A stretch of DNA of 64,000 nucleotides from Laetmonice hystrix (Eukaryota), in NCBI GenBank assembly GCA_965235115.1, contig OZ249447.1, positions 3,224,001-3,288,000 of the forward strand, in the 5' to 3' direction. A program made the translations under genes and the position numbers. The notes under the pieces are model-generated. The model saw only the letters and a list, made by a program, of their open reading frames with translations, made no database searches and was not told the origin of the DNA. Within the stretch, counting starts at the first letter, position 1, and each line of letters begins with the position of its first letter. Below are positions 1,734 through 58,535 of this stretch, one piece after another.

Positions 1734-2912
1734 ACTTGTTGAAGTCTACAGTCAGCTGATATCAGCCGCCACAGTTGTGGTGATACACAGCTTGGCTGAC
1801 CCTCAGGTACGCCTGCAGGTCATGCAAAACATGACAGCCACACAGGAGCTAGGTAATCAGCCAGCCAACCGTGGCTACTATATGACAAGATCCTGACAGC
1901 AGGCACAAAGGAATTGGATCAGGACAAAACTGCCACTCGCAGGTCTTTGCATGCATTCAACCTTTAAGTTACAATTGACACCAGCAAGTATTTGTAGGAC
2001 CTTTTGGTGGGACAAAGGGAGAGGGTGTGCTGTATGAGGTGTGTGGGGCTGTGAGACCATTCCCGCAGGTAGTCAGTGTAAATTGCCACGAGGTAGGCAA
2101 CAGCCATATTACGGTGTCACAGTCGTGGTCACCCATAATATATGTGGTCAGAGGTGTCTCATGAAGGGTAGCCACACTTGTGTTTTTGACGGTCCATCAG
2201 GAATGTTATCCTACCAGGAACTGCGAGCACTCGGTTGTGTCGGAACTGTAGCACTAGCACACGGAAGGTTGTCATTGGACCGCACTGACAGGTGGATCAA
2301 AACTTGTCAACCACCTTCAGGTAGAAAAAAATGAGTTTTTTAACAAGGACAGGTGGCAAGACCGATCTAAGCGTCTGTTAATAGAGGTGAATAACAGCCA
2401 CCTCTCTATTAATGTGCTGAACCGACTTGTGCATTACCTTATTCATGGTCAGTATTATCGGTCTATCAGAAGGAGATACATTTTGAAGGGAAATAGTTAT
2501 TTCACAAATAAGCCCTGAGACTTGGTGTTGAAGAAACAGTCCACCTTAAAGAAAACGGTTACATTGATTCATAAATTGGGCGGGCTTTGAACAGAAGCTC
2601 TTTGTAAATCTCTTTTCAAATGTCATGTGTGACTCTCAGGTCCTCCAACCAAAGATTGGAAATGCCAATCATTTCTACTAGATGGACATGAATGTAGGAG
2701 AGTTAGTAAACATGAAAAAACAACCCCATTTCCTACAGTACCAACGATTTCTTAAAGGAAAGCATTGAGGGGAGGTATTAAAATCGTTGCATGGTCTGTC
2801 AAGGCGAGGTGTAATAAAGACAGGTATATATATTTCTGGTGCGGTCCCCCAGTGGTAACTACTGAAATGCCCAGCAGGTTGGGCCAAGGTCAGGGTCAAG
2901 GTCAGGTGATTA

Positions 2913-3532
2913 TGTCGTACCGACGAATTTTAGGCTAAATTTTCATTACATTATTTGGTAAGAGTTTTCTTCAAACCTTATTCGTGTTAAACTTCAGTTT
3001 GCCTTAAGCTTTATTCTTGTGTCATACAGCAATCTAGACAGTGTAATGCCAAATGACATTGTGTTCTTTGATGGTGTGGATGGCAGCTTTGATGCCAGAA
3101 TTGTTCTAACAATAGTAGAAGGACATCTATAGGTGCACAGTTAGAGAACCTTAATCCCCGTGTTTTAGCACCTCTTTGATCCCGTGTCCAGCGTCAATGT
3201 GTCCGTTTCACAACTGACTTCTATCTCCTCTATGTCTTTGTTCAGTCAACCGTGTTCAGTCATTTGAGTCTGGCACAAAGATAATTTCAGTACAAGCAGG
3301 CTGCCCACTAAGGGCTTGGGCCAATAGCTGGCCAGGATTATTTTGTTCTATTTGATTGGCCGGTTTGCGACCAGCCATTTTCCTTATATACTCATGTTAT
3401 ACCTTGAAACTTCACTTGGAATTTTATAATGACACGACAATAAACTACAGCTCACATCAACAAGATTGTCGTCCTTCTGCTTGACACTCAGTTTTCTGGA
3501 TGTTGTAAGGTGAGCCAAGTGGCCTTACGATA
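2913..3532 (+). repeat. 5' LTR (620 bp)
   Basis: No difference from 4860-5479 found by eye; imperfect terminal inverted repeat TGTCGTA/TACGATA. Confidence 0.95.
3321..3444 (+). promoter_or_regulatory. LTR U3/R signals: CCAAT, ATTGG, TATA-like box, poly(A) signal
   Basis: CCAAT 3321-3325, ATTGG 3355-3359, TATATA 3385-3390, AATAAA 3439-3444 in the classical LTR order; repeated at +1947 in the 3' LTR. Confidence 0.65.
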
Positions 3533-3533
3533 A

Positions 3534-3551
3534 TGGTGGAGAGCCCGGGCA
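3534..3551 (+). other. Primer-binding site, tRNA-Ala-like
   Basis: TGGTGGAGAGCCCGGGCA, 1 nt after the 5' LTR; 15/18 match to the complement of a metazoan tRNA-Ala(AGC) 3' end as I recall it (TGGTGGAGAATGCGGGCA). Confidence 0.7.
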
Positions 3552-3625
3552 GTTAGCACTTTTTAGCTGCTGACGTCCCATATGTGAGCTATCACCCAGA
3601 GGACAGAACCAGCCTGAAGACAACC

Positions 3626-4762
3626 ATGGAGGGATTTCTTCCCACACCTGTTGTGACATTCCTAAATGGAGCTAGAAACCTGGGAGTGTCACTAAGCTGG
3701 AATATTACCAGTTCACAGGGGAAGAACTCTGTACTTCTAGAATGGAGTATCCAGCCAAAGTACAGCTCCACTGGAAAGTCCACCTGCCACAAGTCTCCCA
3801 GCAGAAGACAGCGGGATGCCCAGCGGTATCAGGCATGGAGAGAGAAGCAGAACCAGGCAGCCACTAAAACAGCGCCTAGGATTCAACAGGAGAAAACCCA
3901 GAACAGGTCAGTTAACAAGGCCAAGAACAACAGGTCAGTCAATGGTCCAAATCATCAGAAGTCAGGAGGTGGACGTCAGAAACATCAGAAGAAACGACAA
4001 GGGGTGCAGCACAAGTCAACGCCTACAGTTGTCACCCATCCACCTCAGGACCAGATCCTGCCTCCTGTGGTGGGTGCCATATCACTGGATCCAAACCCTT
4101 CTAGATCAACGAGATCAACACAGACAAACAGGCAGGTCACGGTCTCCTGTGAGGTACAAACCCCTCAACTCAATGTGGAATCTAAAGATGTTCAAACTGT
4201 CTGTTCATTTACTGAGTCAACTAACAGCAGCACTCAGTCTGAACCAGTGGGCACAACCAGTGTGCCAACCCAAACCCGGACCAGCAGGGGTGATCAGAGT
4301 ACCCAGACTGAGGGAAATCACCCCCAGAAGACAAGACAGTTGTTGACACCCATGTCTCTCAAATCTAGTGATCTGGAATTTCCAGATCAGCACTTCATTG
4401 ACTCTCTAGTCAGGAATAGAAGTGATCCGGGGACACTGCCCATTCTGCACAGTTCAAAGAGAAATCAGGACAAAAGAATCACCTTGAAAGTGGCATATGG
4501 ACAACAGACATATGAGACACCTAAGTATGATTTTTCAGGTGTTGCTGCCACTAAGGAGACTTTGATAAAACATTTTCAGTTATCTGGCATATATCCTTCA
4601 GCATGTTATCTTCTTACAAAATACAGAGGACAGCACTATATTGTACCAGATACAGTTTCTTTTGGGCAGGTGAAACTGGTGAAACATGATAGTGTACTTT
4701 CTGCGACGCTCATAGTTTATAATTATGGAAAAGGGAGTTATGTTGTCCAAGACCACCAATAG
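3626..4762 (+). CDS. LTR-element-encoded protein of unknown function, 378 aa (N-terminal Trp domain, basic linker, 6 TQT/LC8-type motifs, putative C-terminal ubiquitin-like domain)
   Basis: Uninterrupted, non-repetitive ORF filling the internal region; first in-frame ATG at 3626 in good Kozak context (CAACCATGG); TAG at 4760-4762; no RT, IN, PR or CCHC motif visible. Confidence 0.8.
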   Translation: MEGFLPTPVVTFLNGARNLGVSLSWNITSSQGKNSVLLEWSIQPKYSSTGKSTCHKSPSRRQRDAQRYQAWREKQNQAATKTAPRIQQEKTQNRSVNKAKNNRSVNGPNHQKSGGGRQKHQKKRQGVQHKSTPTVVTHPPQDQILPPVVGAISLDPNPSRSTRSTQTNRQVTVSCEVQTPQLNVESKDVQTVCSFTESTNSSTQSEPVGTTSVPTQTRTSRGDQSTQTEGNHPQKTRQLLTPMSLKSSDLEFPDQHFIDSLVRNRSDPGTLPILHSSKRNQDKRITLKVAYGQQTYETPKYDFSGVAATKETLIKHFQLSGIYPSACYLLTKYRGQHYIVPDTVSFGQVKLVKHDSVLSATLIVYNYGKGSYVVQDHQ

Positions 4763-4845
4763 AATGAAATTGTCCACAAAAAAAAAAACATGGTAAAAGG
4801 ACAGCTTAAAACATATTTAAGTAAGAGCCGGGACGTCTCTTTTTC

Positions 4846-4855
4846 AAAGAAGGGG
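4846..4855 (+). other. Polypurine tract
   Basis: AAAGAAGGGG, 4 nt upstream of the 3' LTR. Confidence 0.75.
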
Positions 4856-4859
4856 CACC

Positions 4860-5479
4860 TGTCGTACCGACGAATTTTAGGCTAAATTTTCATTACATTA
4901 TTTGGTAAGAGTTTTCTTCAAACCTTATTCGTGTTAAACTTCAGTTTGCCTTAAGCTTTATTCTTGTGTCATACAGCAATCTAGACAGTGTAATGCCAAA
5001 TGACATTGTGTTCTTTGATGGTGTGGATGGCAGCTTTGATGCCAGAATTGTTCTAACAATAGTAGAAGGACATCTATAGGTGCACAGTTAGAGAACCTTA
5101 ATCCCCGTGTTTTAGCACCTCTTTGATCCCGTGTCCAGCGTCAATGTGTCCGTTTCACAACTGACTTCTATCTCCTCTATGTCTTTGTTCAGTCAACCGT
5201 GTTCAGTCATTTGAGTCTGGCACAAAGATAATTTCAGTACAAGCAGGCTGCCCACTAAGGGCTTGGGCCAATAGCTGGCCAGGATTATTTTGTTCTATTT
5301 GATTGGCCGGTTTGCGACCAGCCATTTTCCTTATATACTCATGTTATACCTTGAAACTTCACTTGGAATTTTATAATGACACGACAATAAACTACAGCTC
5401 ACATCAACAAGATTGTCGTCCTTCTGCTTGACACTCAGTTTTCTGGATGTTGTAAGGTGAGCCAAGTGGCCTTACGATA
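4860..5479 (+). repeat. 3' LTR (620 bp)
   Basis: Copy of 2913-3532, followed by TSD ATTA. Confidence 0.95.
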
Positions 5480-6474
5480 ATTACTTGGCCCGGGTGAAGC
5501 CTGGGTAGTGTTATCGTCTACGTCCAGCCTTGAAGACTTGAACTTTGACCTTGACTTATACAGGCACCCCCGAGGTGGCAAGACTGGCTGGCCTGTGTGC
5601 AAGTTTTGTCACTTTGAGGGATCCGTTAAACTTGTCACCGCTGTGTTATAAAGTGCCCTTAACACAAACTGATCGTTACAAATGGTGTCATACTGTGGGA
5701 ACCGTCTCAGGGAGGGCTCCAGGGGTTTCCGAGCTAGGGGTTCTACATCTTACCCCACTGGTGACGTGGGGTTGTAACACGGATCACCTTACTACCTTGG
5801 TGTTCATTCGACCGTGTCGGTTTAAATCACAGCCAGGGGATCAGTCACCGTGATGTTGGGGTTTCTTAATGACGCCTGCTCTCTGTAAGGTGGCATTATA
5901 ATTATTGCACGTTTATTTTGGGCGTGTTTATGATATCTTTTAGCGACCTGTAGAAACTAGAAGGGGTTTTGGTTTTACCAGGGTTTTACCCCATCCTGGG
6001 TTTATGTATGTGTCCTGAAATCTCACAACCAGAGGTCGGAATATTGGACGAAATGACAAAAATATGTAGCCCGAAGTGATTGCAATTCTAACAGAAGGTG
6101 TTAAGAAGAACTCAGGTAGACCCCAGCCACTCTGCAAGATCTATTTCAGAGACAGAGAGATGGTGGAAGGTAGGACCAGATTCTCCCCAAATTAAAAAAG
6201 GACGATTGGGGGTGGTTGCTACCTGTTTCCCACATGTGGCTCACCTGGACAGGTAGGGATGGGCGATCAGATAAGGAACGCCTTGCTCAGGGGGGTGTGG
6301 CGTCCATGGGTCAGCGGGTAGATCGGGGTGGTAGATAGGGAGCCAGGGGGTGGGGTTGGCAGGTGTGGGTAGTGGGGGGGTGTGTATGCCACTTCTTACC
6401 TAGTCTGTCTGGACGTGCCTCCAGACACCCCAGTCCCCACCTCACCCCAATAATTAAAGTCGGTCATACCATCC

Positions 6475-6703
6475 GAACTTACACTACCACCATGACACAA
6501 TCCCCAAGTCATGACTTATGGTCCCGTCATCTGCCTTCTAGGCCACCTTTCTAACACAATATACCAGTTATTGAGGCAGTTATGGTGAACTTACACTACC
6601 ACCATGACACAATCCCCAAGTCATGACTTATGGTCCCGTCATCTGCCTTCTAGGCCACCTTTCTAACACAATATACCAGTTATTGAGGCAGTTATGGTGA
6701 ATT
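6475..6703. repeat. 112-bp tandem duplication
   Basis: GAACTTACACTACCACCATG... at 6475 and 6587. Confidence 0.92.
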
Positions 6704-9700: not shown

Positions 9701-12700
9701 TGTGTGCCCTGTGATGTCTGGTTCCGCATGGCTGAGTGTGGATGACGCCAGCCGCCGCACACGATATGTGTGTGAGGCCAGTCGACAATCGATTTACCAT
9801 TGGTGTAGAATAATGTCGAGAACCTGGAGATGACATTACTGATGATAACATCGACCCTCGGCTTGGGCTACACTATAGAATCACTTCTCATGTTTCACCC
9901 AGAGACCAATTTATTCGTTTCTCATTCTTTTTTTACCATACTCAGCTGTTGACTCGCGATACCCTCTCAGGGGCAGTTGTCCCGTATCCTAAATCATTTA
10001 CCTATAGTCAGATACATTGTATCATGAAAGATCTTTACTGTAAACTTATTGGTTCTATGTCATTTATCTTAGTTAAAAATAGACGGGTATTGTAAATTAT
10101 GATATACTGCCTGCGCTGACAGGGTTAGGAGAGGGGTACAGTTATTATCAGTACCCTGATAACATCATCCCTGGGTGCTGACTGACCAGACACCCCGCCA
10201 GCCGTACCCCCACACCCCTTCCACCCCACCCCAACCAGACACAGAGGGATGTCACTGACCAGTGGTCAGCTGAACGACCAGGTGTACGTACAGAGGGATG
10301 TCACTGACCAGTGGTCAGCTGACGACCAGGTGACAGATCTGAACCTCCAGGTGTACGTAAAGATAACCAGAGACGCTACAGGTAATATCTCCAGGTGTCT
10401 CAGAACAAGGTTGTCATTCTACAGTCGACATAACGGTGCCTAACGACCAGGTATACCTTACCCCGCCTTGGGTACACCGGACACTCGCTCCTCCTGTCTA
10501 CTGTATGAAGGTACCAAACTGTATGAGGTACCAAACAGTCCTGTCTACTGTATGAGGTACCAAACAGTCCAGGAAGTCCGTGACGTATCGACAGCTGGGA
10601 GTTCCGGGAAATGAATCATCTCTTTGATGTGGACAGCTGGTTAATTACAGGTGAGACCATGTGGTGGTCAAGATATAGGCAGACCGTATCAGTGGGTTAA
10701 TTGGTCATTAACATTCGTAGTTTTAACGGGTCCTCTACTCTGCTACTTCTCGGATATTAAATGACAACAATCAGTAATACTGTAGTCAATCTATTTTAAC
10801 CGTATATTGATGCCTGGAAGCTCTACTGAGAGGGGAGACTCTAGGCATACGTGCTAACTGCAAAATGAGTAAGACTGAGAAAATTGTGGAAGGGAAGATT
10901 TGTTTATCCTAGATTCAGTAATCTTAAGGGTCCATATATTCTGACATGCTGGACGTGTTAATATCTGGCATCACCTTGTTGACAGCTGTCGATCAGACAT
11001 GACTGAAGACTATTCCTCATGTCATGAAGTCTAGGCAGGTGATGTCTGCCTTTGTCTGCCAGAGAAAGTAGAGAAAAATGTTTTTGTTCACAGGGTGGAT
11101 ATAATGGCGGGTCAGAAGTCGACAGTTTCCGTGATGCCTTGGGCCGGTGCCTGGGGGAGGGGGCCCGGGGCGGGGGTGTCAGGGAGGCAGGGGGTATGTC
11201 AGTGGAGAGTCAGACCTTGTAGGGTCTATGAAAATAAAGATATTAAACCATCCCAGTGTGCTGCTGGAGAGACCATAGTATGGAGATATAGGGGAGGTGA
11301 CCTGCCCAGCTTAGCCCGGACCCTGACGGTGAGGGAGGCGGGCAGGCAGGCAGCAGGGCCTGGCCTGGTGGCAGCAGGGCCTGGCCTGGTCTGTGTTGAG
11401 GCCCCTGACGGCCCATAACTTGGCATGATGAGGCTATGCTCGTGTTAACATGACGGCCCTGCTCTGCCCTCGCTTTGAGCACTTTACAGGGGTACAAGCT
11501 GCTCCGTGACACCTGGGGTCAGATGTCAAAGACAATTTGCAGACCCAGAAAATAGTGGGAACAGCTGCAAAAATTATAGGGGGAAACTCCCCCTCTCCTG
11601 TACCACCACCACAATGGTACCTTCCTAGGCATAGATCCCCGTGGAGTAGGGGTAGAATTTTCCAACAAATTACTAACAGTTGAGGGAGACGAATATAAAC
11701 GACAAGGGGGGAGTCAGACGTTTTGTGAGAGAAGGACTTGGTGAGTGATGATGGTGACACGAGACTTGATGTTACATGAAAGGAGACCGGTGATGTATGA
11801 CTCAAAGAACGCATTGACCCGCTTTCTGCTGGCCACGTGATTCCTGGCGAGGCAGACATGACTTTGTGAAATAGGTGTTCACAAGTTGAAAACAAAACAT
11901 GTTGCTAACATACCTCAAACAACAGTCTTCAGTTTACTTTTTATCGGTGAGGAATGAGGAAAATAAGTGAGACTATTATTGTGTTGTAATTTCTAAATAA
12001 CGACAAAAAGTCGATTCATTTTTGGGCAAATTGACAGCTTAGAGCCTTGTTTGTCTGGTCATTTATTGGTGGTTTACTCAGCGGATACAAAACAGGCGCA
12101 TTCAACCTGATGGCAGGGGACTGTGTTTTCCACAAATATGGCTAATCTGTTTGTGATGGTGAGCCCCGCCGAGGGCTGGAACACCATGCCAGAGTGGGGG
12201 AGGAGAGAAAGCAGAACGGAGCTTTGTCAAACTGTTTGCCTTCAGTCTGGGTTTAGGGAGGTCGGAGAAACTATATCTTTGAGCATACACTGGTATGAAA
12301 GAGAACCGGCATGGGGTGCAGGGGTGAGGGAGATCTAGGGCAGACAGACGCAGGCCCACCTTGGCGTTCAGGAACGCTCAGAGAAATGTCAGGGGTTCTC
12401 TCTGTTTTTGTCGTTGGTGTCGTTTTGACGAGCCGACATATTCTGTACAGAGACGATCCGAGCCATGTTTTCCTTCATGTTGAGTAAAGAATTTGTTTTT
12501 GAGAAAATCACTTTACCATGATAAGTCAGCGTTTAGTACAAAGTCAACATTTTCTCATGCGAGAAACATAAATTCATTGTAAGATGGAAGGACAAAATGT
12601 TTTCTTTTTCATCGGCAGATGTCTTTTGATCTCATAAATGCTTCCAGATTTACCCCAGATATTAAGACTATCGTATGACACTGACTGGAGGCGACACCGA

Positions 12701-17521: not shown

Positions 17522-17554
17522 CTAATGCATATAATTTGTCTGGTCACAATCCAT

Positions 17555-18355
17555 GATACCTCTCTCGTAGACTCTTTGTGCTGAGCTGGGTACTTCTCTG
17601 GTAGACTCTTGTGTTGAGCTGGATACCTCTCTAGTAGACTCTTTGTGTTGAGCTGGGTACCGCTCTCGTAGACTGTTGTGTTGAGCTGGGTACCGCTCTC
17701 GTAGACTGTTGTGTTGAGCTGGGTACCGCTCTCGTAGACTCTTTGTGTTGAGCTGGGTACCGCTCTCGTAGACTGTTGTGTTGAGCTGGGTACCTCTCTC
17801 GTAGACTGTTGTGTTGAGCTGGGTACCGCTCTCGTAGACTGTTGTGTTGAGCTGGGTACCGCTCTCGTAGACTGTTGTGTTGAGCTGGGTACCGCTCTCG
17901 TAGACTGTTGTGTTGAGCTGGGTACCGCTCTCGTAGACTGTTGTGTTGAGCTGGGTACCTCTCTCGTAGACTGTTGTGTTGAGCTGGGTACCTCTCTCGT
18001 AGACTGTTGTGTTGAGCTGGGTACCGCTCTCGTAGACTGTTGTGTTGAGCTGGGTACCGCTCTCGTAGACTCTTTGTGTTGAGCTGGGTACCGCTCTCGT
18101 AGACTGTTGTGTTGAGCTGGGTACCGCTCTCGTAGACTCTTTGTGTTGAGCTGGGTACCGCTCTCGTAGACTGTTGTGTTGAGCTGGGTACCTCTCTCGT
18201 AGACTCTTTGTGTTGAGCTGGGTACCTCTATGGTAGACTCTTTGTGTTGAGCTGGGTACCTCTCTCGTAGACTCTTTGTGTTGAGCTGGGTACCTCTCTC
18301 GTAGACTCTTTGTGTTGAGCTGGGTACCTCTATGGTAGACTCTTTGTGTTGAGCT
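17555..18355. repeat. 33/34-bp minisatellite, about 24 copies
   Basis: GTTGAGCTGGGTACC(G/T)CTCTCGTAGACT(GT/CTT)TGT units. Confidence 0.96.
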
Positions 18356-18356
18356 A

Positions 18357-18760
18357 AGTTGACTCCACCAAGGAATTCCTAACGACCTCCCGGTAAAGTG
18401 TGTGGGGAGAAGGTTTTCGTGGAAGTTGTCATTGTTGAACATGGAGATGTTTGTGAATGTCACATTCCTGTAGAACCGAGAGACTGTCAGATTGTTGTCA
18501 GACATTCAGATTGTTGTCAGACATTGATGTGTCCGTGTTGGCAGTGGTCGTAGTGACGGAATGTGTGTTTGATGGATCATGACACGAACGGGAACTCCCG
18601 CTCTGCATTCATTGTGTCGATAAAACTCATGTTAACAACTGTTGAGTATGTTTAATTGTTAGGATTGATTACTGATTAATAGTGCGTGATAACTTCATGT
18701 GTGAACAATGCTGGGTGCACAGAATGGTTGCGGATAATGTACGTTCTCCCATCTCTCTGT
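18357..18760 (-). mobile_element. Possible decayed CR1/L2-type LINE ORF2 fragment (end of APE plus linker)
   Basis: Minus-strand translation SMSDNNLTVSRFYRNVTFTNISMFNNDNFHENL...IPW resembles the SDH..I...ITYR.FK.FN...F..DL...W pattern following the endonuclease; short and degenerate. Confidence 0.4.
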
Positions 18761-23488: not shown

Positions 23489-23778
23489 CACCGATTAAAA
23501 GTCCCCCTCCCATACCTGTGAACCACGTGTCTCGACCTTGTCCTCTCCGACTCGCCCTCCATAGAGTCCAACCACTTGACCTATATTCAAACTTGACCTA
23601 TATTCAAATTTGTGTATTAAAAGGAAGTGCTGGCTCAGGTAATGAGGTCAGTGAATGAAAGGTACCACTTTAATTGATTCATTATCATAAACATTCCCAC
23701 TGAGCGAGGGGCCAGAGTATGACATAATTATTACACACCTGTACAACCTCTCACCTTCTGAGAAACTCAATTTGTTAA

Positions 23779-24305
23779 AGGGAGTCGTAAAATTCATTTT
23801 TTTCGATTTATGGCAGTCTTAGAAACATATGATTCGCATACCTTGGACTCCCAGTAACATCATGTGAGACTGTTATGGCCCAGCGACCAGTATTTAGTAA
23901 GGAAAATATGCCAAATCTCTCGCACATACGTAGCTCAGAATTAGCGAGTGGCCCACAGGATATTTGAGTTGGCCGCGGTCGGGCGATGATGAAGCGTGAT
24001 CACGTGACTTCCGGGTGTACATGCGGTATTTAGGTCAACATTAGACTAGAGGGAGATTCCCTTCCACACCCGGAAGTCACGTGATCACGCGTCATCATCG
24101 CCCGACCGCGGCCAACTCAAATATCCTGTGGGCCACTCGCTAATTCTGAGCTACGTATTTGCGAGAGATTTGGCATATTTTCCTTACTAAATACTGGTCG
24201 CTGGGCCATAAGAGTCTCACATGATGTTACTGGGAGTCCAAGGTATGCGAATCATATGTTTCTAAGACTGCCATAAATCGAAAAAAATGAATTTTACGAC
24301 TCCCT
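23779..24305. mobile_element. Fold-back MITE, Kolobok/T2-type (TTAA TSD, AGGG...CCCT termini)
   Basis: 240-bp arms (23779-24018, 24066-24305) with about 3 mismatches by eye and a 47-bp spacer; TTAA at 23775-23778 and 24306-24309. Confidence 0.88.
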
Positions 24306-25459
24306 TTAATTCTAAGAAATTCCTCGGATACTACAAAATGTAAATTGCAGATAAACCAGGCATTGACCTCAAAGACTATTACAGATTTAGCCATATACCT
24401 GGAAGCTGTAACAAGGGATGCGGTTGTGTTATTTTTACTAGGACGGTTGAAGAACAGCACCTCTGGGATTGTACTAAATCAGTATCAGCTGTATAATATT
24501 AATCAAGTCAGGTCATGAATATGGTATCCTGCAGGCAGTGAATATTCATGTTGACTCCGACAGCCGTTACACTTGAAATGTCTACAAATGGTGTTATAAA
24601 ACTGGACACGGGTGATTCCAGGGCTAAATGATGCAGTCTCACTGACTTGATAAACAGTATGTTCACATAAAGTCCAAGAAAAGTGATATTCCTGTGGAAT
24701 ATGACACGAATAAACACAGTTGTGATGTCCGTTTTTGTAGCTAACCCAGTGGTGATGTCCGTTTTTGTAGCTAACCCAGGGATCAGCGACCTGACACAGG
24801 TTCAGTGCTGGCGGGGTTGGTCGTTATTATGATTTAACGATACGGGCGGACTGTCAGGCCTAGGCTCCCGGGACTCTCGGGGTGGACAGGTTAGAGTCGG
24901 GGCCAGGATATATGGCAGGCCGTAACCCTCATAACACTGTCATCAGTAGCGCCACTACCTCCGCCTCAGGGGAGCGTTCTCAGCGCCCGACAGGCAATTA
25001 CTGCTCGCACTGCTATCCATAATGTGGGAGTTTGAAAGGCTCTTCAAAACTTTTATGAAATGTCCCCTTCCCCAGCAGCCATTTCAAAATGATGTTACAT
25101 AACCTGTAAGAATAGACAGATTCCCCCTGTGCCATTATAATGTATCATTACCCCTGTTTCATATAATATAGGCCTATATTCAGCCAATTCATATAATATA
25201 TATAATTCCCTTAGTGTCATATAATATATGATTAGGCCTGGCCCGGTCACAACAGGAATCAGATAATAGCCTAATGTCTCTAAAATGTTAATGAATGTAT
25301 TTACGGAGGTCTCAGTGAAGTCGATGTTAAGGTTTCACAGATGGGATAAATGAAGGATATGTTAAGTAGGCCTCAAGTAGGCCTGTTCCTGTAACAGTTT
25401 GTGTCAGACCAGTGTGGTAAAGTTTTATATTAATGTTTTCTCTGTGTTCTGTGTTACAG

Positions 25460-25812
25460 ATGGAATAAACGAGGTGAAAGCAACATGTCGTCTGTTTGTC
25501 CGTCTCGTCACGGAGGACATGCTCTACACGAGCGTGACGTTACGTCTTAACGCCATCACACAGACAGCGTTCCTCTCTCCTCTCTACCACCGCTTCGTGG
25601 CAGCACTGGCGTCTATCATTCCCACCACCGAGGATAACATTTACGTCATCAACGTCAATGACGACACTGACGTCACGGATAAAATACTTAACGTCAGTTT
25701 TAGTGTGCGACAAAAGGTTGAGAATAACCGGGATGTGTATTACTCACCTCAGTTTCTACGGGAACGAGTTTACCTACAGCGCACCCTGCTGGCCAAGTTG
25801 TCAACACTGGAG
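25460..25812 (+). CDS. Celsr: Celsr/Flamingo internal exon: end of cadherin repeat plus atypical CADH9/Flamingo-box region
   Basis: (D)GINEVKATCRLFVRLVTEDMLYTSVTLRL...FLSPL...NDDTDVTDKILNVSFS...YLQRTLL matches CELSR DGIHSVTA.C...TDDMLTNSITVRL...FLSPL...NDTDV..ILNVTFS...YLNRTLL; acceptor TTACAG (phase 1), donor GAG|GTAAGT (phase 0). Confidence 0.96.
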
Positions 25813-27756
25813 GTAAGTGTCCTTGTTACCTGATATATTCCAAAATTTGCATACGTCATAGATCTCATTGTTTTCTCCAGCGTTTCAGTTCAGTTCAACT
25901 TTGGAGGAATCCCAGGGACGTGTTAGATTCTCTGTAATTGTATCTGAGGCAACAAATGGCCAACTTGAATTTCTCCAGGCTGAGTAGGGTCAAAGGTTAG
26001 GTGGTTAATGGGGAGTTGCCCCAGCTTGGGTGTTAAAGCCAATATGTGGCTTGTCATTCAGAATGGAACAGGAGGATTGATGGCTGAGAATGAAATCAAA
26101 ACGCTGAGTTTACAGTTTCCAACACGTAACCAAGCTCCTCGTGACAATAAAAAGATCTGTATCCCATTGTTATGAGTAAGGTGATCCCATTGCGTAGATC
26201 CTTAGGTGAGCTGGGACTCTCGGTACAATATTTAATAACCATCAAGTCAAAATAGGGATACAGTTTCAACTGTTGTGTGAGGAATAGTTGCTGTACTGAA
26301 AGAGTGAGCCAAGCTGGCGGTTGTTGTATTGAGGATGGGATCAGGTTTAGTGAGGGGATCTTTGTCCCGAACATTATTCATTATCTTTACTCCTACCTTG
26401 ACGTGTGCGATGTCTCACAGATGTGAGATTTAGAAATACGTCAGACAAGGATGAACTAGCTACAGTGACACGTTGACGGAGGAGTCAGCATCTGCTTTAG
26501 GAGGTAACCGATTTCCCGATGACAGTGGGGGTCAGCCTCTGGTTGAGGAGGCAGCCAATTTCAGGGTTCATGTTGCCGTAGCCGTCTCCGAGTCAGCCTG
26601 TAATGTTGGGATCCAACTGGGGAGGTCGGCGCCATGGCCCTGAGCTGACAGGTGACAACATCCATTAATATTAGCTTTGGAAGAGGAGACTGCTCACGAA
26701 TAAGGTTTCAGTGATCACCCCCTCCGTGCCCCGTACCCTCACCCCAGTTCTCACCCCCATGTAGGGTTTATTTGATACAGAAAGTTTAGATCCGAACCCA
26801 GCCGTGCGATTTCAGGCCCACACTGGGTAAATCTCAGCAGTATTTCAGATCATGTTTCACAGCTAAGCCGCTTAGCATACAGAGGCAGTGGGATGTTTTT
26901 TTCACTTAGGGTCAAAAAGGGGGGTAAAAGTAGGAGTCCAGGTCCTTCCACCCCCGCCCCCAACACGTGACTGGGCTGAAGATGGTGGTAGACAGATGGT
27001 TCACGTTAGCTTGGGAAGTGTTTGAGCCGTGTTCGAGCATCCAGACTGTTACAACTCGGTGAGGGCAATCGGCCATGTCTGAGCGGAGTGTTGGGGGAAA
27101 CTCCAGCCTTTACTGGACTCCTCCCACAGCAAACATACCGACATGTTATTACAAACACGACCTACCCCAGCCGGCGACCGACCTACCCTGGCCGGCGGCC
27201 GACCTACCCTGGCCGGCGGCCGACCTACCCCGACCTCAGACCTCCGTACCCTGCCGGTCCCTCGGCCCCAGCCGGCTCCGTCGCCGCCCAGCCTCACGGC
27301 CACACTCAGTGGTCTTATAAAACGCTTCAACTCATTCCAGACATGAGGAATTCAAACTGATCTTTTCAATCTTACTCCATTCTTCTGAAATATTTGCGGA
27401 CTTAGGCCTGCCATCCCTATGTGTTGAAATGAAGTCTTTCTGTGTCTCAAAATAGATGTAGGCCCAAATAAAGTAATCTGGGGTGAGTTTACTCAAATCA
27501 ACACCAAGATTTATGGTGCTGGCAACAGGCCTTGCAGCACTCAGCAGGTCAGTGACTGTCGGGACTCGGTGGTCACTGCTCGGTGGTCACTGCTCGGTGG
27601 TCACTGCTCGGTGCTTCAGATCATGATTCCCATTTCTTGAAACCACTTGTTTCCAGGTCAGTTTGGGTCGGTGACTTTAGTATGGTTGACATCTGTTGAT
27701 GATAGGGCCTTCGGTATGAAGGTCAGGGGTCGTTGAAATCTGTCAGGTCTGACCAG

Positions 27757-44354: not shown

Positions 44355-46123
44355 TCATGTGGTCTGGACTGATTGACCGTTACTGACAGGGGTGCCCAGC
44401 CACCAGAACTAAGTACGTGGGAGATTGCTCTGTTGGGTGGCCAAGGAGTCATGAATCATGCTTTGTTACATGCGACATGGCAATAATGGGATCATAAGTA
44501 ACATGTCAGTGGGATGACCTTGGGGTCATGGGTCACAGGTCACTCATCAACAGGTGCGTGATGTATACCCCCTAGAGACCGAGGAGGTCAGAAGGCAGAA
44601 ATAGGTACATAATTGGGGAAAAACGGCACTGCAAGAGGAGCGTCTTCCCGTCCCATCATCAGCATACCTTGGGTCGTTTTACATGCCGGGTATAGGTTAG
44701 TGGGCATTAAGTTTGGAAATTGAGAGCCTACATGCTTTATGGCCAAATGGGGATTTTTATAAGATACATCTGCGGATAGTGTGGGAGGGTCTGTGTCGGT
44801 ACTCGGGGACCGTTTCACAATCAGCGATGGTCCATCAGAACGGCGACGGACAGTCTGCCACCTAGTTGGGGGGCCTGGTATTTTAGGTTCTTCGCGGATC
44901 CGATCATTTGTGAAACGACCCCCTTGCCCAGCACTGAGCAGTGTAGGTGTTGCCTGGTGGTGGTGGTGGCCGGTGGTGGTGGCCGGTGGTGCGGGAGACG
45001 TCAGTCACGTACCATCAGTCTCACTAGTGTCCCTCTCCCCCTCCCAGTTCGGTGAGAGGATTACCCTCCGTACACCACCCACCTCCTCAGTGAGAGATGT
45101 CCCGCCGTGAGGTGTGACAGGTAGACAAGGTGGGACATCTGTCACACCTGTCTACCCAGCTCATCAATACCAACGTTACCTGAGGAACTCCCGGCAAATT
45201 CTGACACGTCATGCGGTCTCAAACATCATTTTGTTTTATTTATTTATTCTTCACACAATATCATGTAAGAATATCTTGCCTGTCTCTGGTAGAATTTGTT
45301 TGACGTTTCCTATTAATTTGGAATGACCCTTTTTTAAAGTCCCACATCATGTAAACGTTTAAAATCACGGAGGATCAATTTGTTGCCACTATTGGGTTTG
45401 TTTTTGCCCGGCCTTGTTAATGTAAAAACCAGTAAGCTGTAGGTAGATGTACAGTGGGGTTGTCTGAGGACGGCAGGCAGCCTGGGTGGCCCAGTTGATC
45501 CCCTAGACTTTTTCAAATCTTACTAACGGCCGGCAGCCATTTGATGTCAGTTGTATTTAACGTGTGATTTCACTGAGGCAAGCACCGAATGGTTGACACA
45601 TTTCAGCACGAGACTTTTTGAGCTGTTTGGGATGCCAAGATGCCAGATATTTTCATTTGCTCTGTGTGTTTCTTACATAGCCTACACCACTAAGGGCAGC
45701 AGTTTGTCCGGTCCCTGGCCTTAAATTAGAATTGCTACTTATTTGGTGAAATGTGGAATTGATCGAATGGAAGTTTATTGATGATTGTCTATGGGAAACA
45801 GGTGGAATTTTGGGAGGAACGAAATAATGCATCATGTGAAGTGTATTGATACATGTATTTTGGATGTCTTGGCCTTGAATGGTTGTATCATGTATTCTCT
45901 ATCCAATGAAAAGTTGTTTATACCAAGTGTAATTCCATCTGCGGCCGTTAAATGTAGTTTTTATGTTTTACTACATGTTCGTGGCACATTCAAGTTAAAA
46001 AAAACCAGCCTGGGTTGTTATTGAGAAGAGGGGAGGTGCAGGCGGTCTGCCTGTACACCGCGGTCTGAGCAACGTTACCAGCCACACAGAGCGGGACTCA
46101 TGGACCCTGGCCCTCCCCAGAGA

Positions 46124-46812
46124 GGTACATGGGTCGTGGCTGGCAGTCTTAGGGCCGACTCCTAGCCGGGATACACGGGTCTTGGCTGGCAGCCTCAGGG
46201 CTGACTCCTAGCCGGGGTACACGGGTCGTGGCTGGCAGCCTCAGGGCCGACTGCTAGCCGGGGTACATGGGTCGTGGCTGGCAGCCTCAAGGCCGACTCC
46301 TAGCCGGGGTACACGGGTCGTGGCTGGCAGCCTCAGGGCCAACTCCTAGCCGGGGTACACGGGTCGTGGCTGGCAGCCTCAAGGCCGACTCCTAGCCGGG
46401 GTACACGGGTCGTGGCTGGCAGCCTCAGGGCCGACTCCTAGCCGGGGTACACGGGTCGTGGCTGGCAGCCTCAGGGCTGACTCCTAGCCGGGGTACACGG
46501 GTCGTGGCTGGCAGCCTCAGAGCCGACTCCTAGCCGGGGTACACGGGTCGTGGCTGGCAGCCTCAGGGCCGACTCCTAGCCAGGGTACACGGGTCGTGGC
46601 TGGCAGTCTCAGGGCCGACTCCTAGCCGGGGTACACGGGTCGTGGCTGGCAGCCTCAGGGCCGACTCCTAGCCGGGGTACACGGGTCGTGGCTGGCAGCC
46701 TCAGGGCCGACTCCTAGCCGGGGTACATGGGTCGTGGCTGGCAGTCTCAGGGCCGACTCCTAGCCGGGGTACACGGGTCGTGGCTGGCAGCCTCAGGGCC
46801 GACTCCTAGCCG
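46124..46812. repeat. 46-bp GC-rich minisatellite, 15 copies
   Basis: GGGTACACGGGTCGTGGCTGGCAGCCTCAGGGCCGACTCCTAGCCG. Confidence 0.97.
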
Positions 46813-47164
46813 AGGTGGTTTACAATTGGTAAAAGCTCACGTACTCAAACAAACCGAACAACTCCTTCAACCAATTTCCTTTGTTTCCGTCTCCCCTGTG
46901 TAATATACGGTGAGACTGTAACACGTCTGAAGGCTGAACTTCCCCAGACAGACCCTGACGGTTGGAAGTCACTGCCTGTGTTTATGTTACACGTGGATGG
47001 CAGAAATCAATCGGCGTACGTTCACATCGCTTGATATTGTTGGTATTACGGATAAGGAGTCTGGATAGATTTGTCATCAGGGCTTTACCTTTCAACGCCT
47101 AGATGAATAATGTAAAAAAAGTGGGAAATCATTGGCGAGGTGACGCCTTGGTGACCTGGGAGCT

Positions 47165-47461: not shown

Positions 47462-48388
47462 GCCCTTGGCGAACATACATTTGCTTGTAGAGGGGGAAGT
47501 CATCCTTTAAGACATGTGGGTATCAAAGCGTGAGGTCATCCTTTAAGGCAGTAATCCTCTCAGTTGCGATTGTAGTAAGGTGTTACATAAAGCTTGGTGT
47601 TGGCGAGCAGCGTTTGTTGTTCTCAGGTGTACATCTATGTGACAGGTATTGTTGGTATGTCACGACCATAAAGTACCAGGTAAAGTGGACCACGCTTGGC
47701 GGGACACCTGACAATACGACACCTGTGGAAGTAATAGGATACAACTCTACATATAGTACGACTTGTCACTGTCACAGTGAGACGCACTGCTTGAGATCAT
47801 CTTAACCCATGCACTGGTCTTTTAAACATCATGGTGAATTGATCTATAATATTGGCAGCCCTTAGGGCTTTCACTGACAAAAAGTCACATAGGTAAATCA
47901 CAGTTCTTTGGGGCATAGTACATCTTTGATTTATTTATAATAGCAATATTATGTAGACGGTGGTGATTTTTTGGGGAAAACTTGTTGTTGTACGAAGATT
48001 GTTGGCAGTTCATTTTAAGATAAGAATTTGACTACATAATAGAGACCAAGTGAAGAGGGAGGTCTGGCTGGCGTTGTATTCTACCAGGGAGTGATAGGGT
48101 GCAAGAGCTTGACACGAGGATAGAGAGAAACAGAGACAGTTTAATGAGGGGGATCGGATCAGAATTGTGGATTGGTTGGTTCCCCATTAGAACCGATACC
48201 TTATTTATCGTAGCCTTGGAAACAACCCCTAAAATGTGTGTTGCTACGAAAAGTCTTCATAGCATTAGTTGACTAAACTTGGCCTGTGGAATTGATCAAG
48301 TATGTGTATAATAATTTAGAAGTGCGCCAGAAGATGTTGAGAGGTGACAGTGTTTGATACTAAGTGTGATTTCATCTTATCCCACCAG

Positions 48389-48563
48389 GTCCTACCGTTT
48401 GACGACAACCTTTGTGTCCGAGAACCGTGTCTGAACTTCGAACAATGTGTCTCCATCCTCAAGTTTGGCAACGCCTCGTCATTCATTGGTTCCGACACCA
48501 TGTTGTTCCGGCCCATCCATCCAATCAACGCCTTCGCCTGTCAGTGTCCGCGAGGGTTCACAG
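48389..48563 (+). CDS. Celsr: Celsr/Flamingo exon: EGF-like 1
   Basis: VLPFDDNLCVREPCLNFEQCVSILKF...LFRPIHPINAFACQCPRGFT(G) matches the CELSR VLPFDDNICLREPC...LFRPIHPING.RCRCPPGFTG signature; acceptor CACCAG (phase 0), donor G|GTCGGT (phase 1). Confidence 0.96.
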
Positions 48564-49127
48564 GTCGGTTCACTTTGTCCTTCACCTTGGCACGTTCAAA
48601 GTTCACTCTGTCTCTCTGTACTGTATGTATATTGGAAATAACATCATGTAGATCTGGGCTGGCGTCCTTCATACACCATGCAATTTGTTGTTGCGATTGT
48701 TGTGTACACCGAAAATTTGATACACCTTAAAGAACATGTAGCCATCCAATCGTGACCTTCAAATTGAGCTCCTTCCTTGAAGGTCAGAATCGCGAGCAGT
48801 TTGCATTGAAAAATTGCATTGTGGACGACAGTTATTTTTATTAGTGCAGATCACATGGTGCTGGCTCTTATAGAACTGGTAGACAGATGTACTCGTTGAC
48901 ATTAGATTTCAACAGATATTTTGGGGGTGTAGATTTTAAAGATTCTTGAACTCTTGATTAATGTGTTGCCGCCAGCTCTAAATGACTCATTACAAAGTCG
49001 TTGACGAGGTCAGTAAGAACATGTGGGCCCAGCCTGAGTGCAGGTCGTGGGGGTGATGGGTTTAGTATGGGGGTAGGTGATGTATGACATGTGACCCGTG
49101 TTATATGTGTATGTATGCCACCTGTAG

Positions 49128-49253: not shown

Positions 49254-51416
49254 GTACGTCACAGTATATGGTTGATAATTACGTCACAACACTATTCAAT
49301 GAACAGTTACGTCACAATAGCATTACCGTCTACGTCAGAGTTAGGTAAGAGTTACGTCACTTTAACGAAAACGTCACAGTACTTTTACCAGGGACGTCAC
49401 CAAATACGTCACACTACTATGTAGTTGAGTCAGAATGCAGACATAAAGTCCAAATATACTCTGCGTCCACAACTCCACCAAAGACCCAAATGGTACTGCT
49501 ATTGATAGGAGAGTTCAGTATGTCATGGATGCAGGAATAAAAGAATCCGTCAGGTACATGTACACTGACTTTAAATTGAAATGATGACGTCAGAGACAGT
49601 CGTCGTGTACATCTGTCTGTGGTTATGGCCACTGATGTGGCCCCATAGTCTCTGAACTTTGTCATAAATAATTTGGTTGGTTTTGTAGAAAAAGTGGCTC
49701 CACTCTTGTCAGGGGATCTCCATATTTCATTCAGAATATCAAGAAGGAGTGAAATCAAGCTTGTGCTGTTAGGTTGATAAATGTTTAGCTTTCACAAAAA
49801 GTGAGTTTTTGTTTTTTTCATTAATTGACCTCTTCCTTGATGTGGAGCTGTGACAGAGTAAAGTGGAACATTTGACCTGATGGTTTATATTATACTAACT
49901 TTGCCTGCTACACCCAGTTACGACTTTGTGTTTGAGAAACATAACTTTGGAAACCATAAGCAGATGGTAAGCAACTTCTCCCGAATACATGATTGCGCTG
50001 GGATTATTTGTGCCCGGCTCACTCTGAATTCATGTCAGTCAAATTCCGTGTTTTATTCGCTCTGAATTTCTTTCACTGAAAACGGAAAATGTTGTGGATT
50101 ACAAGTGGTCACACAATGTAAGTTAAGAAAGCTCAATTCCAATCAGGTTTTAAGGAAACAACGTCATTTCCTGCTGATAGATGGCGCTTGGGTGGCTGGA
50201 ATATCAGCAGTCACCCTATTACCAGTCTTCTCTGCCCTGCCCCAGGACCTGGCATTCCCTGGGGCAGAGGTCAGTCAAGTCAGGCATTGTCTCGCTCAGT
50301 TAGAGAGTCCAAAGTCCATGAATTCTGAGACTAGGGCGGAAAAAAACCGGCCATGATTAGAAACAGGGGGTCATTTATCCTTCTTTAGACCAGTGAGTTT
50401 GATTTTTTAAATCCTGTAAAATAAAAACGACATTGTTTTTTTTATTATAAACTGGATATTTTTATGTTATCGTAGCATAAAGAAAAACTTGTGTTTGGGG
50501 CTGAGGATTTATAAGCTTACATAAAATACTCTGCGATTTTATGTATGACCTCGATAACAATTCAACCCATGCAGATACGGAGATACCTGTATAATAGGCC
50601 CCCTATGCAAGGCTACTGTCAACATGTACCAGGTTTTTGTAGGAATAACAAACTATTTTTGATTAAAACGGGCCATATAATACCTCATGCATGAAAGTGA
50701 CCGACAGTCTTCAAGTGGAGGTGATATATGAGGAATGCACCAGTAAAAAGTACGGACGACTAACAGCTGTGTGGGGGTTGATGTTGGTACCCCGCTCCCT
50801 CGCCCTGACCTGGGTGTGACCGCATAGACCCTGCCCACCAACAGGTCCTCTTACTGCCCTCACACGCCCTTGTCGTACAACCAGGCTGAGGGCAGTCAGC
50901 CCACAGCGGTTCAGGGATTCGTGTTGTCAGAACGAGGCGCGAACATTCTCTAGGGTTGTCTACTGAAAACATTGAAAATTTTAAAATATATCTGTGGGAC
51001 AAAAAGAAACCTGGTACCAGAAGATCGGAGGAGTTCAGCAAAACTTCTTGAAGGAGATAAATCCTCAATTAGAGTTGTTGATCAGTATGCAGGGCGTACC
51101 CCATGGGACAGCACAGGGAGAACCCTGAGATGGGAATGGACCAACTGTTGCATCTTCAGGGAGCAGTTAGTAATTGGGAAAGGGACCTTTAGTCAGTCAG
51201 GATCCCAACTTGCTCATGATGTTTGCACGGAACCAACGAAAATACCAGTAGGCTCTCGGTCTGTTGGCGCTGTGTGGACTGGAGTATTTGTTAATTAGTC
51301 GGATTAATTAAGAGATAGACCCTGAGAGACGCAGGACCTGTGAAAGTAACAGATGCGTGTATGTGGAGGCGGAGGGGGGCGGGGTGAGTCAAGATAGTGG
51401 AGGTCTTATTGGTGCC

Positions 51417-52130
51417 ATGCGACCCACAGAATGAACACACATGTGACCCCCAGAATGAACACACATGCGACCCCCAGAATGAACACACATGCGACCCACA
51501 GAATGAACACACATGCGACCCACAGAATGAACACACATGCGACCCACAGAATGAACACACATGCGACCCACAGAATGAACACACATGTGACCCACAGAAT
51601 GAACACACATGTGACCCACAGAATGAACACACATGTGACCCACAGAATGAACACACGTGACCCACAGAATGAACACACATGCGACCCACAGAATGAACAC
51701 ACATGCGACCCACAGAATGAACACACATGTGACCCACAGAATGAACACACATGCGACCCACAGAATGAACACACATGCGACCCACAGAATGAACACACAT
51801 GCGACCCACAGAATGAACACACATGCGACCCACAGAATGAACACACATGCGACCCACAGAATGAACACACATGTGACCCACAGAATGAACACACATGTGA
51901 CCCACAGAATGAACACACATGCGACCCACAGAATGAACACACATGCGACCCACAGAATGAACACACATGCGACCCACAGAATGAACACACATGTGACCCA
52001 CAGAATGAACACACATGTGACCCACAGAATGAACACACATGTGACCCACAGAATGAACACACATGTGACCCACAGAATGAACACACATGTGACCCACAGA
52101 ATGAACACACATGTGACCCACAGAATGAAC
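51417..52130. repeat. 24-bp minisatellite, about 30 copies
   Basis: GACCCACAGAATGAACACACATG(C/T); one unit near 51655 lacks 2 nt. Confidence 0.98.
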
Positions 52131-57866: not shown

Positions 57867-58225
57867 GTGAGCATGAGAAGATGTCGATCGTTCTCATCGC
57901 CTTTATTTAAATTTAATCCTGTCCATTCCAATGGATTAACACTTTAATTATTCTCACCATTCACCAACCAATGCTCGGGCTGTCTGTTAGTAAAATCGCT
58001 GTCGATTTAAAAAAGTATTTGGGGTTTCGAGCTTCCGTAAAGATTTATGGCATTAAGTATATTTTTCATCAGATTTATTTACGACTGGCTGAGCTGACAA
58101 TGCCATTCATTTACAAATGGCCTTTCTTTATTGTCAAGGTAATGAATCAGGAATGATTTGTGATATTTACTGTGCCCCTTGAAGGATAGAATTCGAATTA
58201 ATCATTATGTTTGTTAATGTTTCAG

Positions 58226-58535
58226 GTGAAAACTGTGAGATCGACATGAGACACAAGAAGTACACGGCTGGCTGTCCGTCTGACGTCTGTAAATCTGGAT
58301 CTCACTGTACGTCCCTGATCCGGGGTGGATTCCGGTGTGAGAAATGCCCGGATACCGGCGCCGGTAGTCTCGCCCCGGATAGTGAGGACGGCAGTACGGA
58401 GAAGTTCTGTATTGACTGCGCTGATATTGAACATCACACAAAGTTCTGTGAACTCACTACACGTAGCTTTCCTAAAGGTTCCTTCCTCATGTTTCCCTCC
58501 CTCAAACGGCGGCATCGATTCACCATCAGATTGGA
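58226..58535 (+). CDS. Celsr: Celsr/Flamingo exon: EGF-like 3 (with insertion) and start of laminin-G1
   Basis: (G)ENCEID...CPSDVCKSGSHC..LIRGGFRC...FCELTTRSFPKGSFLMFPSLKRRHRFTIRL matches CELSR CEVTTRSFP..SF..F..LRQRFHFTISL; acceptor TTTCAG (phase 1), donor GA|GTAAGT (phase 2). Confidence 0.95.

Follow-up and report, generated by a model that had tools for sequence, protein, structure and literature searches.

The 64-kb window analyzed here (64,000 nt of Laetmonice hystrix contig OZ249447.1, to which all coordinates refer) harbors a compact element at 2913-5479, which is probably best read as a young copy of a lineage of small (~2.1-2.8 kb) single-gene long terminal repeat (LTR) retrotransposons that are unable to reverse-transcribe or integrate themselves and that carry a protein other than Gag in the gag position. 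There is little doubt about the structural classification, namely a small, single-gene, non-autonomous LTR retrotransposon. The reading draws on the intact anatomy of the element, on homologues of its gene, and on remote relatives with the same type of primer-binding site (PBS) and a shared leader hairpin.

Anatomy and age of the element

Self-comparison of the window revealed a direct repeat (2913-3534 = 4860-5481) of 622 nt with 0 mismatches, around which the following features are arranged:

2909..2912, + strand: left copy of the target-site duplication (TSD), ATTA, read from the sequence and equal to 5480-5483
2913..3532, + strand: 5' LTR, 620 nt, TGTCGTA...TACGATA, 100% identical to 4860-5479
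3534..3549, + strand: PBS TGGTGGAGAGCCCGGG, 1 nt past the 5' LTR
3552..3574, + strand: RNA-leader stem-loop, from folding and covariation with the remote elements L001 and L003
3626..4762, + strand: single open reading frame (ORF), 378 amino acids plus stop (stop codon 4760-4762), from the ORF scan and homologues
3626..3868, + strand: N-terminal module, residues 1-81, from alignment A3, the AlphaFold2 model, and hhalign
4118..4309, + strand: six Q-centred motifs in the linker, from conservation, enrichment, and low predicted local distance difference test (pLDDT) values
4367..4759, + strand: C-terminal domain, residues 248-378, from AlphaFold2 (pLDDT 60-87) and Foldseek
4846..4855, + strand: polypurine tract (PPT) AAAGAAGGGG, 10 nt, read from the sequence, 4 nt before the 3' LTR
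4860..5479, + strand: 3' LTR, 620 nt, 100% identical to the 5' LTR
5480..5483, + strand: right copy of the TSD, ATTA, equal to 2909-2912

The whole element measures 2567 nt, with 1327 nt of interior between the LTRs, in a window that contains zero N. Structurally, it shows what defines an LTR retrotransposon, that is, paired LTRs with a TSD, a PBS at the 5' LTR, and a PPT at the 3' LTR, but not the protease, reverse transcriptase (RT)/RNase H, and integrase of an autonomous element, as the interior has one ORF and no Pfam match. The ends can equally well be read as a 3-bp TSD (TTA) with 621-nt LTRs. The LTR termini (TGT...ATA, i.e., TG...TA) form an imperfect terminal inverted repeat instead of the canonical TG...CA, and among the remote relatives the LTRs end in ATA in L001, L004, and L180 and in ACA in L003. 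In the 5' LTR, CCAAT (3321-3325), ATTGG (3355-3359), the TATA-like TATATAC (3385-3391), and AATAAA (3439-3444) follow one another, and the L001 LTR has the same TATA-to-AATAAA order with ~90 nt from there to the LTR end; this motif order fits the expected layout of a U3 promoter, a short R, and U5. The start codon of the ORF at 3626 lies in a strong Kozak context (ACCATGG).

Since the two LTRs differ at zero positions, the insertion is very recent. A first-pass annotation of this DNA had made the same claim, having described identical 620-bp LTRs, an ATTA TSD, a PBS, a PPT, and a 1327-bp interior, all of which were recovered. It had also taken the 4-bp TSD as a sign of Gypsy, a step that does not hold: a TSD of this length is not diagnostic and there is no pol, so that the element cannot be assigned to a superfamily. 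Within the 64-kb window, neither a second copy of the LTR or the interior nor any tRNA gene or Rfam family was detected, and BLAST of the reconstructed empty site uncovered no overlap with another repeat or a palindrome.

That the direct repeat is an assembly artefact, in the form of a collapsed or duplicated repeat, is scarcely credible. The 622-nt perfect identity is known from the assembly alone, and short-read assemblers do mis-join LTR elements (cf. the circularly permuted L001 below), but an exact 4-bp duplication bounds the repeat, the PBS and PPT adjoin the inner LTR edges, and the layout agrees with that of independently assembled relatives.

Two further features of the interior were noted. 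A run of 11 A at 4778-4788, 15 nt past the ORF stop and inside the element, may be the poly(A) remnant of an ancient capture or may have arisen by chance. In addition, a 176-aa R-rich ORF (3816-4346, + strand, in another frame) is nested in the main ORF where this encodes the low-complexity linker; codon composition probably accounts for it.

The single gene, its close relatives, and its predicted protein

The chance of 378 stop-free codons in a row is approximately (61/64)^378, or roughly 1e-8, and homologues exist, so that the ORF is not a chance occurrence. A search of 5.8 billion clustered proteins retrieved 8 homologues with 39-53% identity, among which six full-length proteins of 376-421 aa cover 98-99% of the query at 39-49% identity. 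The 90%-identity clusters of these close relatives comprise 1-27 members, dispersed on different contigs of up to 1 Mb, and 13 of the 15 members listed for the largest cluster have the full 421 residues. The contigs of the ENA assembly ERZ26222911, in which these relatives occur, carry LINE, Helitron-type PIF1, GIY-YIG, and pogo-like genes, and it is therefore regarded as eukaryotic. In all five gene contexts from this assembly the ORF is solitary, with no called gene within several hundred bases, and neither gag nor pol was found adjacent to it in these five neighbourhoods.

Conservation along the protein is patterned. Mean pairwise identity amounts to 68% in the first 78 residues versus 51-52% elsewhere, with the linker at 51% and 10% gaps, and indels in the alignment of close relatives are restricted to the linker. 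Six lineages that lie 50-60% apart in protein sequence each have an uninterrupted ORF of near-equal length; by our own estimate, neutral decay to such a protein distance would give many stop codons. Judging from these sequences, the ORF is a real, conserved, multicopy gene. A protein-guided locus search of viral and metagenome contigs yielded no relative, and profile searches for longer proteins (with alignment A4, and with A5, which has a 600-aa first row) revealed nothing that was fused or related to Gag/pol.

Moreover, four of the ERZ26222911 proteins (P0002-P0005) combine two N-terminal types with two C-terminal types in all four possible ways, the shared N-terminal segments being 95-100% identical and the shared C-terminal segments 78-100% (mostly 95-100%), with a breakpoint at approximately alignment columns 270-285, which is the border between the linker and the C-terminal domain. 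P0001 joins the N-type of P0002 and P0003 to a third C-type. The two-by-two mosaic shows that the subfamilies recombine with the frame kept; template switching between co-packaged RNAs would lead to such a mosaic, with gene conversion as the alternative.

These patterns also bear on the possibility that the element is a recent internal-deletion derivative of an autonomous element, with the ORF as a functionless gag-pol remainder. Internally deleted LTR elements are common, and identical LTRs say nothing about the age of the interior arrangement. Nevertheless, subfamilies with 39-53% identity repeat the same short one-ORF layout, in which both the stop position and the C-terminal domain are conserved, and a one-ORF layout is found in L001 and L004 as well; a functionless remainder fits poorly with the contrast between N-terminal module and gapped linker and with the invariant residues of the linker motifs described below, and no longer relative was found in the searched databases. 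Such an origin is highly improbable.

Searches by sequence gave the ORF no known identity. A Pfam scan returned zero families even at E<=10, precomputed Pfam domains were absent from every homologue and profile-search match, and a PDB sequence search yielded nothing but weak, likely chance matches to antibody light-chain constant domains (E >= 0.1). The Pfam and PDB results agree with the earlier statement that the 378-aa ORF has no visible protease, RT, RNase H, integrase, or CCHC knuckle. An AlphaFold2 model of the full-length protein, built from a seven-sequence alignment (mean pLDDT 47.6), divides into three regions. The N-terminal module is predicted to consist of a helix (7-18) and a beta-hairpin (22-30/33-41), which a loop connects to a long helix rich in arginine (58-81), and the N-terminal 100 residues reached a mean pLDDT of 73 with a more diverse alignment. 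Foldseek with this module produced nothing significant (best E 0.9). Two resemblances of this part of the protein were rejected: one to double-stranded RNA-binding domains was not significant (Foldseek E about 1-4), and one of residues 8-50 to the antibody kappa constant domain (profile E 0.004) was set aside, given an AlphaFold2 helix there, an incomplete domain, and no cysteine pair.

The linker (residues 79-247) is predicted to be disordered, with pLDDT <50 (10-residue block means of 22-30 over 81-240), and is T/Q/S/P-rich with a net charge of +13. For the C-terminal domain, the predicted topology is a helix followed by beta-beta-alpha-beta-beta-beta (E285-291, E294-297, H306-316, E325-333, E336-339, and E357-366). 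Foldseek against PDB and the BFVD viral library returned almost exclusively ubiquitin-like (UBL) proteins for it, with a best PDB E of 8e-4, most top probabilities of 0.9-1.0, and target-normalised TM-scores of 0.58-0.71 against isolated UBL/SUMO chains. The matches include the DUSP-UBL of USP15/USP4/USP11, ubiquilin, SUMO, FERM F1, and giant-virus ubiquitin-like proteins. The C-terminal domain can thus, with moderate support, be ascribed to the ubiquitin-like (beta-grasp) fold.

No capsid, nucleocapsid/zinc knuckle, protease, RT, or integrase was found by Pfam, PDB sequences, AlphaFold2, or Foldseek in PDB and the viral library; the protein is without detectable capsid, nucleocapsid, or pol homology and is not a recognisable Gag. 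The first-pass annotation had described an intact modular protein with no recognisable gag and had proposed an AlphaFold model with Foldseek as a check for a diverged Gag; the full-length homologues, the predicted domains, and the P0002-P0005 mosaic bear out this description, and no capsid fold emerged. An extremely diverged true Gag, making the element an animal counterpart of TR-GAG with its own capsid shell around the RNA and with Pol alone borrowed, is accordingly unlikely. The ORF does lie where gag would, being the first one behind the PBS and leader, its basic helix could act like a nucleocapsid, and there is a precedent in TR-GAG elements, which have gag as their single ORF (PMC4350172). 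However, the Pfam scan matched neither Retrotrans_gag nor zf-CCHC, the homologues are equally devoid of precomputed domains, and Foldseek yielded no capsid from PDB or the viral library; three helices outside the UBL domain plus 170 residues of disorder also differ from an all-helical, two-domain capsid of ~200 residues.

In the linker, six sites (RSTQTN, CEVQTP, KDVQTV, SSTQSE, VPTQTR, and QSTQTE) are centred on Q166, 178, 190, 204, 216, and 227, with spacings of 12, 12, 14, 12, and 11 residues. The invariant residues of the linker fall into these six sites, and the Q is invariant wherever a site is present (P0006 is without site 3). Five sites match [TVI]QT versus 0.73 expected from linker shuffles (p=0.0004), the sixth being TQS, and in whole-protein shuffles p was <=0.002 in five of six close relatives and 0.10 in P0001, which has two strict matches. 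No DNA tandem repeat underlies the array. The motif recognised by LC8/DYNLL is [D/S]-4 K-3 X-2 [T/V/I]-1 Q0 [T/V]+1 [D/E]+2, in which TQT forms the epicentre of binding; the consensus is DKSTQTD for natural sequences and VSRGTQTE for phage-selected ones (PMC3078936). SKDVQT, DQSTQTE, and RSTQT match it well, the first two at several flanking positions too, and, as in LC8 motifs, the sites lie inside a disordered segment according to sequence and predicted disorder. Some remote relatives that cannot otherwise be aligned in this region have periodic [TVI]Q[TC] arrays too, namely P0023 (five [VT]QC sites, 11-13 residues apart, p=0.0004), P0019 (four sites), and P0015 (three sites). A literature search found no description of a retrotransposon protein with such an LC8-motif array. 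The LC8 part of the mechanism considered below is possible on this motif evidence, at a little short of an even chance.

Module, primer-binding site, and leader hairpin in remote relatives

With the family profile, HMMER searched 1.84 billion representatives exhaustively and returned 18 matches only; some of these are fragments of the same family, and P0016, a spurious repeat protein, was set aside. The remote matches P0015, P0017, and P0019-P0024 are alike only over the first ~80-100 residues, where hhalign against P0015 gave a probability of 97% (E 2e-11). Identity of the module among remote elements is ~25-35%, with W25, K56, P58, R63, D64, and R67 invariant in alignment A3 in the form K-S-P-S-x-R-R-R-D-x-x-R. 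Their C-terminal parts diverge, and P0024 has a coiled-coil-like stretch with a weak chromo-domain match.

Four remote loci (L001, L003, L004, and L180) have the same PBS type upstream of the module-bearing ORF, TGGTGGAGA in L001, L003, and L180 and TGGCGGAGA in L004, and the ATG of that ORF lies 75-120 nt downstream of the PBS in every case. L001, a contig of 2210 nt whose ends overlap by 55 nt, represents a circularly permuted LTR-plus-interior unit of 2155 nt with one ORF, which has a stop at codon 7; at its junction, the LTR end CTACGATA is followed by GA and then TGGTGGAGAATCCGG. In L004, the LTR start TGTCGTAAGG occurs twice, 1733 nt apart (again an LTR-plus-interior unit with one ORF), and the LTR end GGATCATA is followed by TT and TGGCGGAGACCC. 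The corresponding junctions read ...GTGACA, AC, and TGGTGGAGAATCCGGG in L003 and ...CTCATAATA, TT, and TGGTGGAGAACC in L180. The leaders of the window element and L001 can still be aligned as DNA (49 nt, 78%). The PBS would fit tRNA-Ala as a candidate primer: in the tRNA 3' end ...GCUCUCCACCA, the U that pairs with base 3 agrees with the G3:U70 identity pair, the signature of this tRNA.

Directly after the PBS, the leader of the window element folds into a hairpin with a UUUU loop, in which a bulged C separates stem segments of 7 bp and 2 bp (-9.3 kcal/mol, z-score -3.3), and a stable hairpin stands in this place in four of the five elements (z-scores -2.6 to -4.4). An ungapped alignment of the hairpin segments only was made for a small sample of three sequences (the window element, L001, and L003) with the structure taken from the window sequence itself; 27/27 cells pair, with compensatory changes in 8/9 pairs. 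L004, which has another structure after the PBS, and L180, with the bulge located elsewhere, were left out of this count. Among 500 shuffles none reached the observed pairing, and slid partners paired at 18-44%. Compensatory double changes in nearly every pair would be hard to explain otherwise than by conservation of the hairpin. Because gene, PBS type, and a cis-acting part of the RNA travel together, these elements appear to constitute a lineage of small one-gene LTR elements and not a one-off.

The same association bears on the view that the LTRs enclose a captured host gene or part of one, in which case the ORF would be a 'cargo' without a role in replication of the element. A C-terminal ubiquitin-like domain is a typical cellular fold, the run of 11 A past the stop (4778-4788) can be read as a poly(A) remnant, and the C-terminal parts vary between remote relatives. 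Against this, the module is always accompanied by the same PBS type and usually by the same hairpin across modules that share only the low identity given above, no cellular homologue of either domain was found (1.84 billion representatives; 5.8 billion clustered sequences), and the full-length ORF is retained in at least six subfamilies. Capture is therefore quite unlikely, and the label 'cargo', which the earlier annotation had used, is better dropped: the gag position of the gene and the co-occurrence of module, PBS type, and hairpin in distantly related elements mark the gene as a hallmark of the lineage and not as an acquisition.

Other loci with the module were also observed. In L005 (2-2078; GCA_013332695.1), the P0020 ORF is preceded by a 327-aa Q/S/P-rich ORF, and a 62-aa ORF with a weak B-box zinc-finger match comes after it; no PBS is visible, and the module stands in a different context. 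One remote member without LTR and PBS comes from GCA_905397895.1, which papers assign to Mytilus edulis, suggesting a molluscan distribution, and a second comes from GCA_011752425.2. A short inverted repeat, AGGTTTG...CAAACCT, lies ~25-45 nt upstream of the 3' LTR in L001 (1500-1525) and L004 (1761-1785) (blastn 25 nt, 88%) and has no counterpart in the window element. Furthermore, 174 loci in metagenome and viral contigs that matched TACGATA plus 1-2 nt plus TGGTGGAGA were all judged chance matches by tblastn and inspection, including L077, which resembled the element downstream of the motif and proved to be an unrelated coding region.

Surroundings, proposed mechanism, and known systems

Beyond the element, the window is rich in repeats. 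Long tandem arrays occur at 45-861, 1135-1841, 17542-18389, 45986-46929, 51320-52257, 53333-54900, and 63224-63738, with periods of 74, 100, 33-34, 46, 24, 32, and 41 nt, and several of them create long spurious ORFs. A perfect tandem duplication with a 112-nt unit (6475-6698) lies ~1 kb downstream of the element, and an inverted repeat (23775-24018 / 24066-24309; 244 nt, 99% complementary, arms 47 nt apart) has the look of a foldback element or a miniature inverted-repeat transposable element. Exon-like ORFs on the + strand at 25399-25833, 48344-48730, and 58207-58539, the latter two with cysteine-rich EGF-like stretches, suggest a position of the window within or close to a large + strand gene with many exons; a Pfam scan of the exon-like ORFs elsewhere in the window gave no match.

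Several points weigh against reading the element as a member of a partner-dependent, single-gene lineage whose protein is not Gag. The close relatives all come from the single assembly ERZ26222911, and the argument for selection on the ORF is indirect, being built on protein-level patterns. Two module-bearing loci from two Mytilus-type assemblies, L002 and L181, show no visible LTR or PBS; they have only 633 nt in common (9989-10621 and 9988-10620, 84% identity) with unrelated flanks, and could represent fragments or copies in decay. In the present element U5 ends in TA instead of CA, which is unusual in integrase substrates. The whole-protein AlphaFold2 model is poor and may conceal a cryptic fold in the linker, the QC that replaces QT in the remote variants is not an established LC8 motif, and LC8 binding, RNA binding, and a role of the UBL domain are proposed from motifs and predicted folds. 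Finally, no autonomous partner was found either by HMMER/profile protein searches or by a scan of metagenome and viral contigs for the pattern of LTR end plus PBS. The first-pass annotation had proposed that RT and integrase are borrowed; dependence on an autonomous partner stands as a deduction from the absence of pol, whereas the partner itself did not come to light.

The single-gene, partner-dependent reading lends itself to the following mechanism. The LTR-driven transcript would serve both as mRNA and as genomic RNA template, and the N-terminal module with its arginine-rich helix would bind this transcript, with the leader hairpin as the candidate site. The six evenly spaced TQT-type motifs could recruit host LC8/DYNLL dimers and so zip two chains into a parallel ladder, which would multimerise the protein much as Gag does and might couple it to dynein transport. 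The ubiquitin-like domain might dock on a host or partner protein. A tRNA, probably tRNA-Ala, would prime reverse transcription, and an autonomous LTR element would supply protease, RT, and integrase in trans. A wider proposal, tentative and on balance doubtful, is that such elements represent an undescribed protein-coding 'satellite' LTR lineage of molluscs or other invertebrates, in which Gag may have been replaced by a non-capsid protein made up of an RNA-binding, hairpin-recognising module, a host-LC8 ladder that would stand in for the capsid in multimerisation and transport, and swappable C-terminal adaptors (ubiquitin-like, chromo-like, or coiled-coil).

If this replacement of Gag were true, it would amount to a new way of assembling retroelement ribonucleoproteins and of parasitising an autonomous partner. 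The usual view of non-autonomous LTR elements is that of non-coding hitch-hikers (TRIM, LARD) or gag-only derivatives (TR-GAG), whereas here a gene is retained over deep divergence and yet is not Gag. Were the protein needed for mobilisation, RNA packaging and trafficking via the host hub LC8 and a ubiquitin-like adaptor would take the place of a capsid. In addition, the 23-nt hairpin, the 80-residue module, and the six short motifs offer defined parts for studies of satellites and their partners in animals, and few known LC8 partners would surpass in valency a mobile-element protein with 5-6 such sites for LC8.

Among described systems, the element is similar to the TR-GAG elements of plants, which are non-autonomous, shorter than 4 kb, and equipped with LTRs, a PBS, and a PPT, together with a sole ORF where gag lies (PMC4350172). 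The TR-GAG ORF is a recognisable GAG, however, whereas no capsid or zinc-knuckle homology was found here by sequence or predicted fold, and the host of the present element appears to be an animal. Like TRIM and LARD elements, it has no pol and would depend on a partner, and the first-pass annotation had framed it in these terms. LARDs are large and non-coding. TRIMs are <1 kb with 100-250-bp repeats and a non-coding interior, and for the biv-TRIM of bivalves no partner was identified and a canonical PBS is absent (PMC6934838). With 2567 nt, 620-nt LTRs, a clear PBS, and a conserved gene, the present element departs from the TRIM definition, and neither its size nor its coding capacity suits the TRIM/LARD framing.

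The predicted parts of the protein likewise have both likeness and difference to known ones. Few LC8 partners are known to have more than two sites (Nup159 with 5, ASCIZ with 7-11, Chica with 3, and Bassoon with 3), and in Nup159 the LC8 dimers stack rigidly between a pair of chains (PMC5963919); Panoramix, a host silencing factor acting in transposon silencing, dimerises via LC8 motifs (PMC7861614). The linker resembles such multivalent partners in its TQT-type run within a disordered segment, with a spacing of about a dozen residues that would be compatible with a two-chain stacked LC8 ladder; unlike them, all of which are host proteins, the array is encoded by a mobile element and known from its motifs. 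As for the C-terminal domain, the predicted fold of residues ~285-366 and Foldseek agree on a likeness to the UBL domains of USP4/USP11/USP15 (DUSP-UBL), ubiquilin, and SUMO, from which it differs in its sequence identity of 8-23%, in having no Pfam ubiquitin-family match, and in a best structural match no stronger than the E of 8e-4 given above. In summary, three features set the element apart from these systems: a conserved protein of non-capsid type, an N-terminal module not characterised so far, and a linker array that is a candidate for multivalent LC8 binding.

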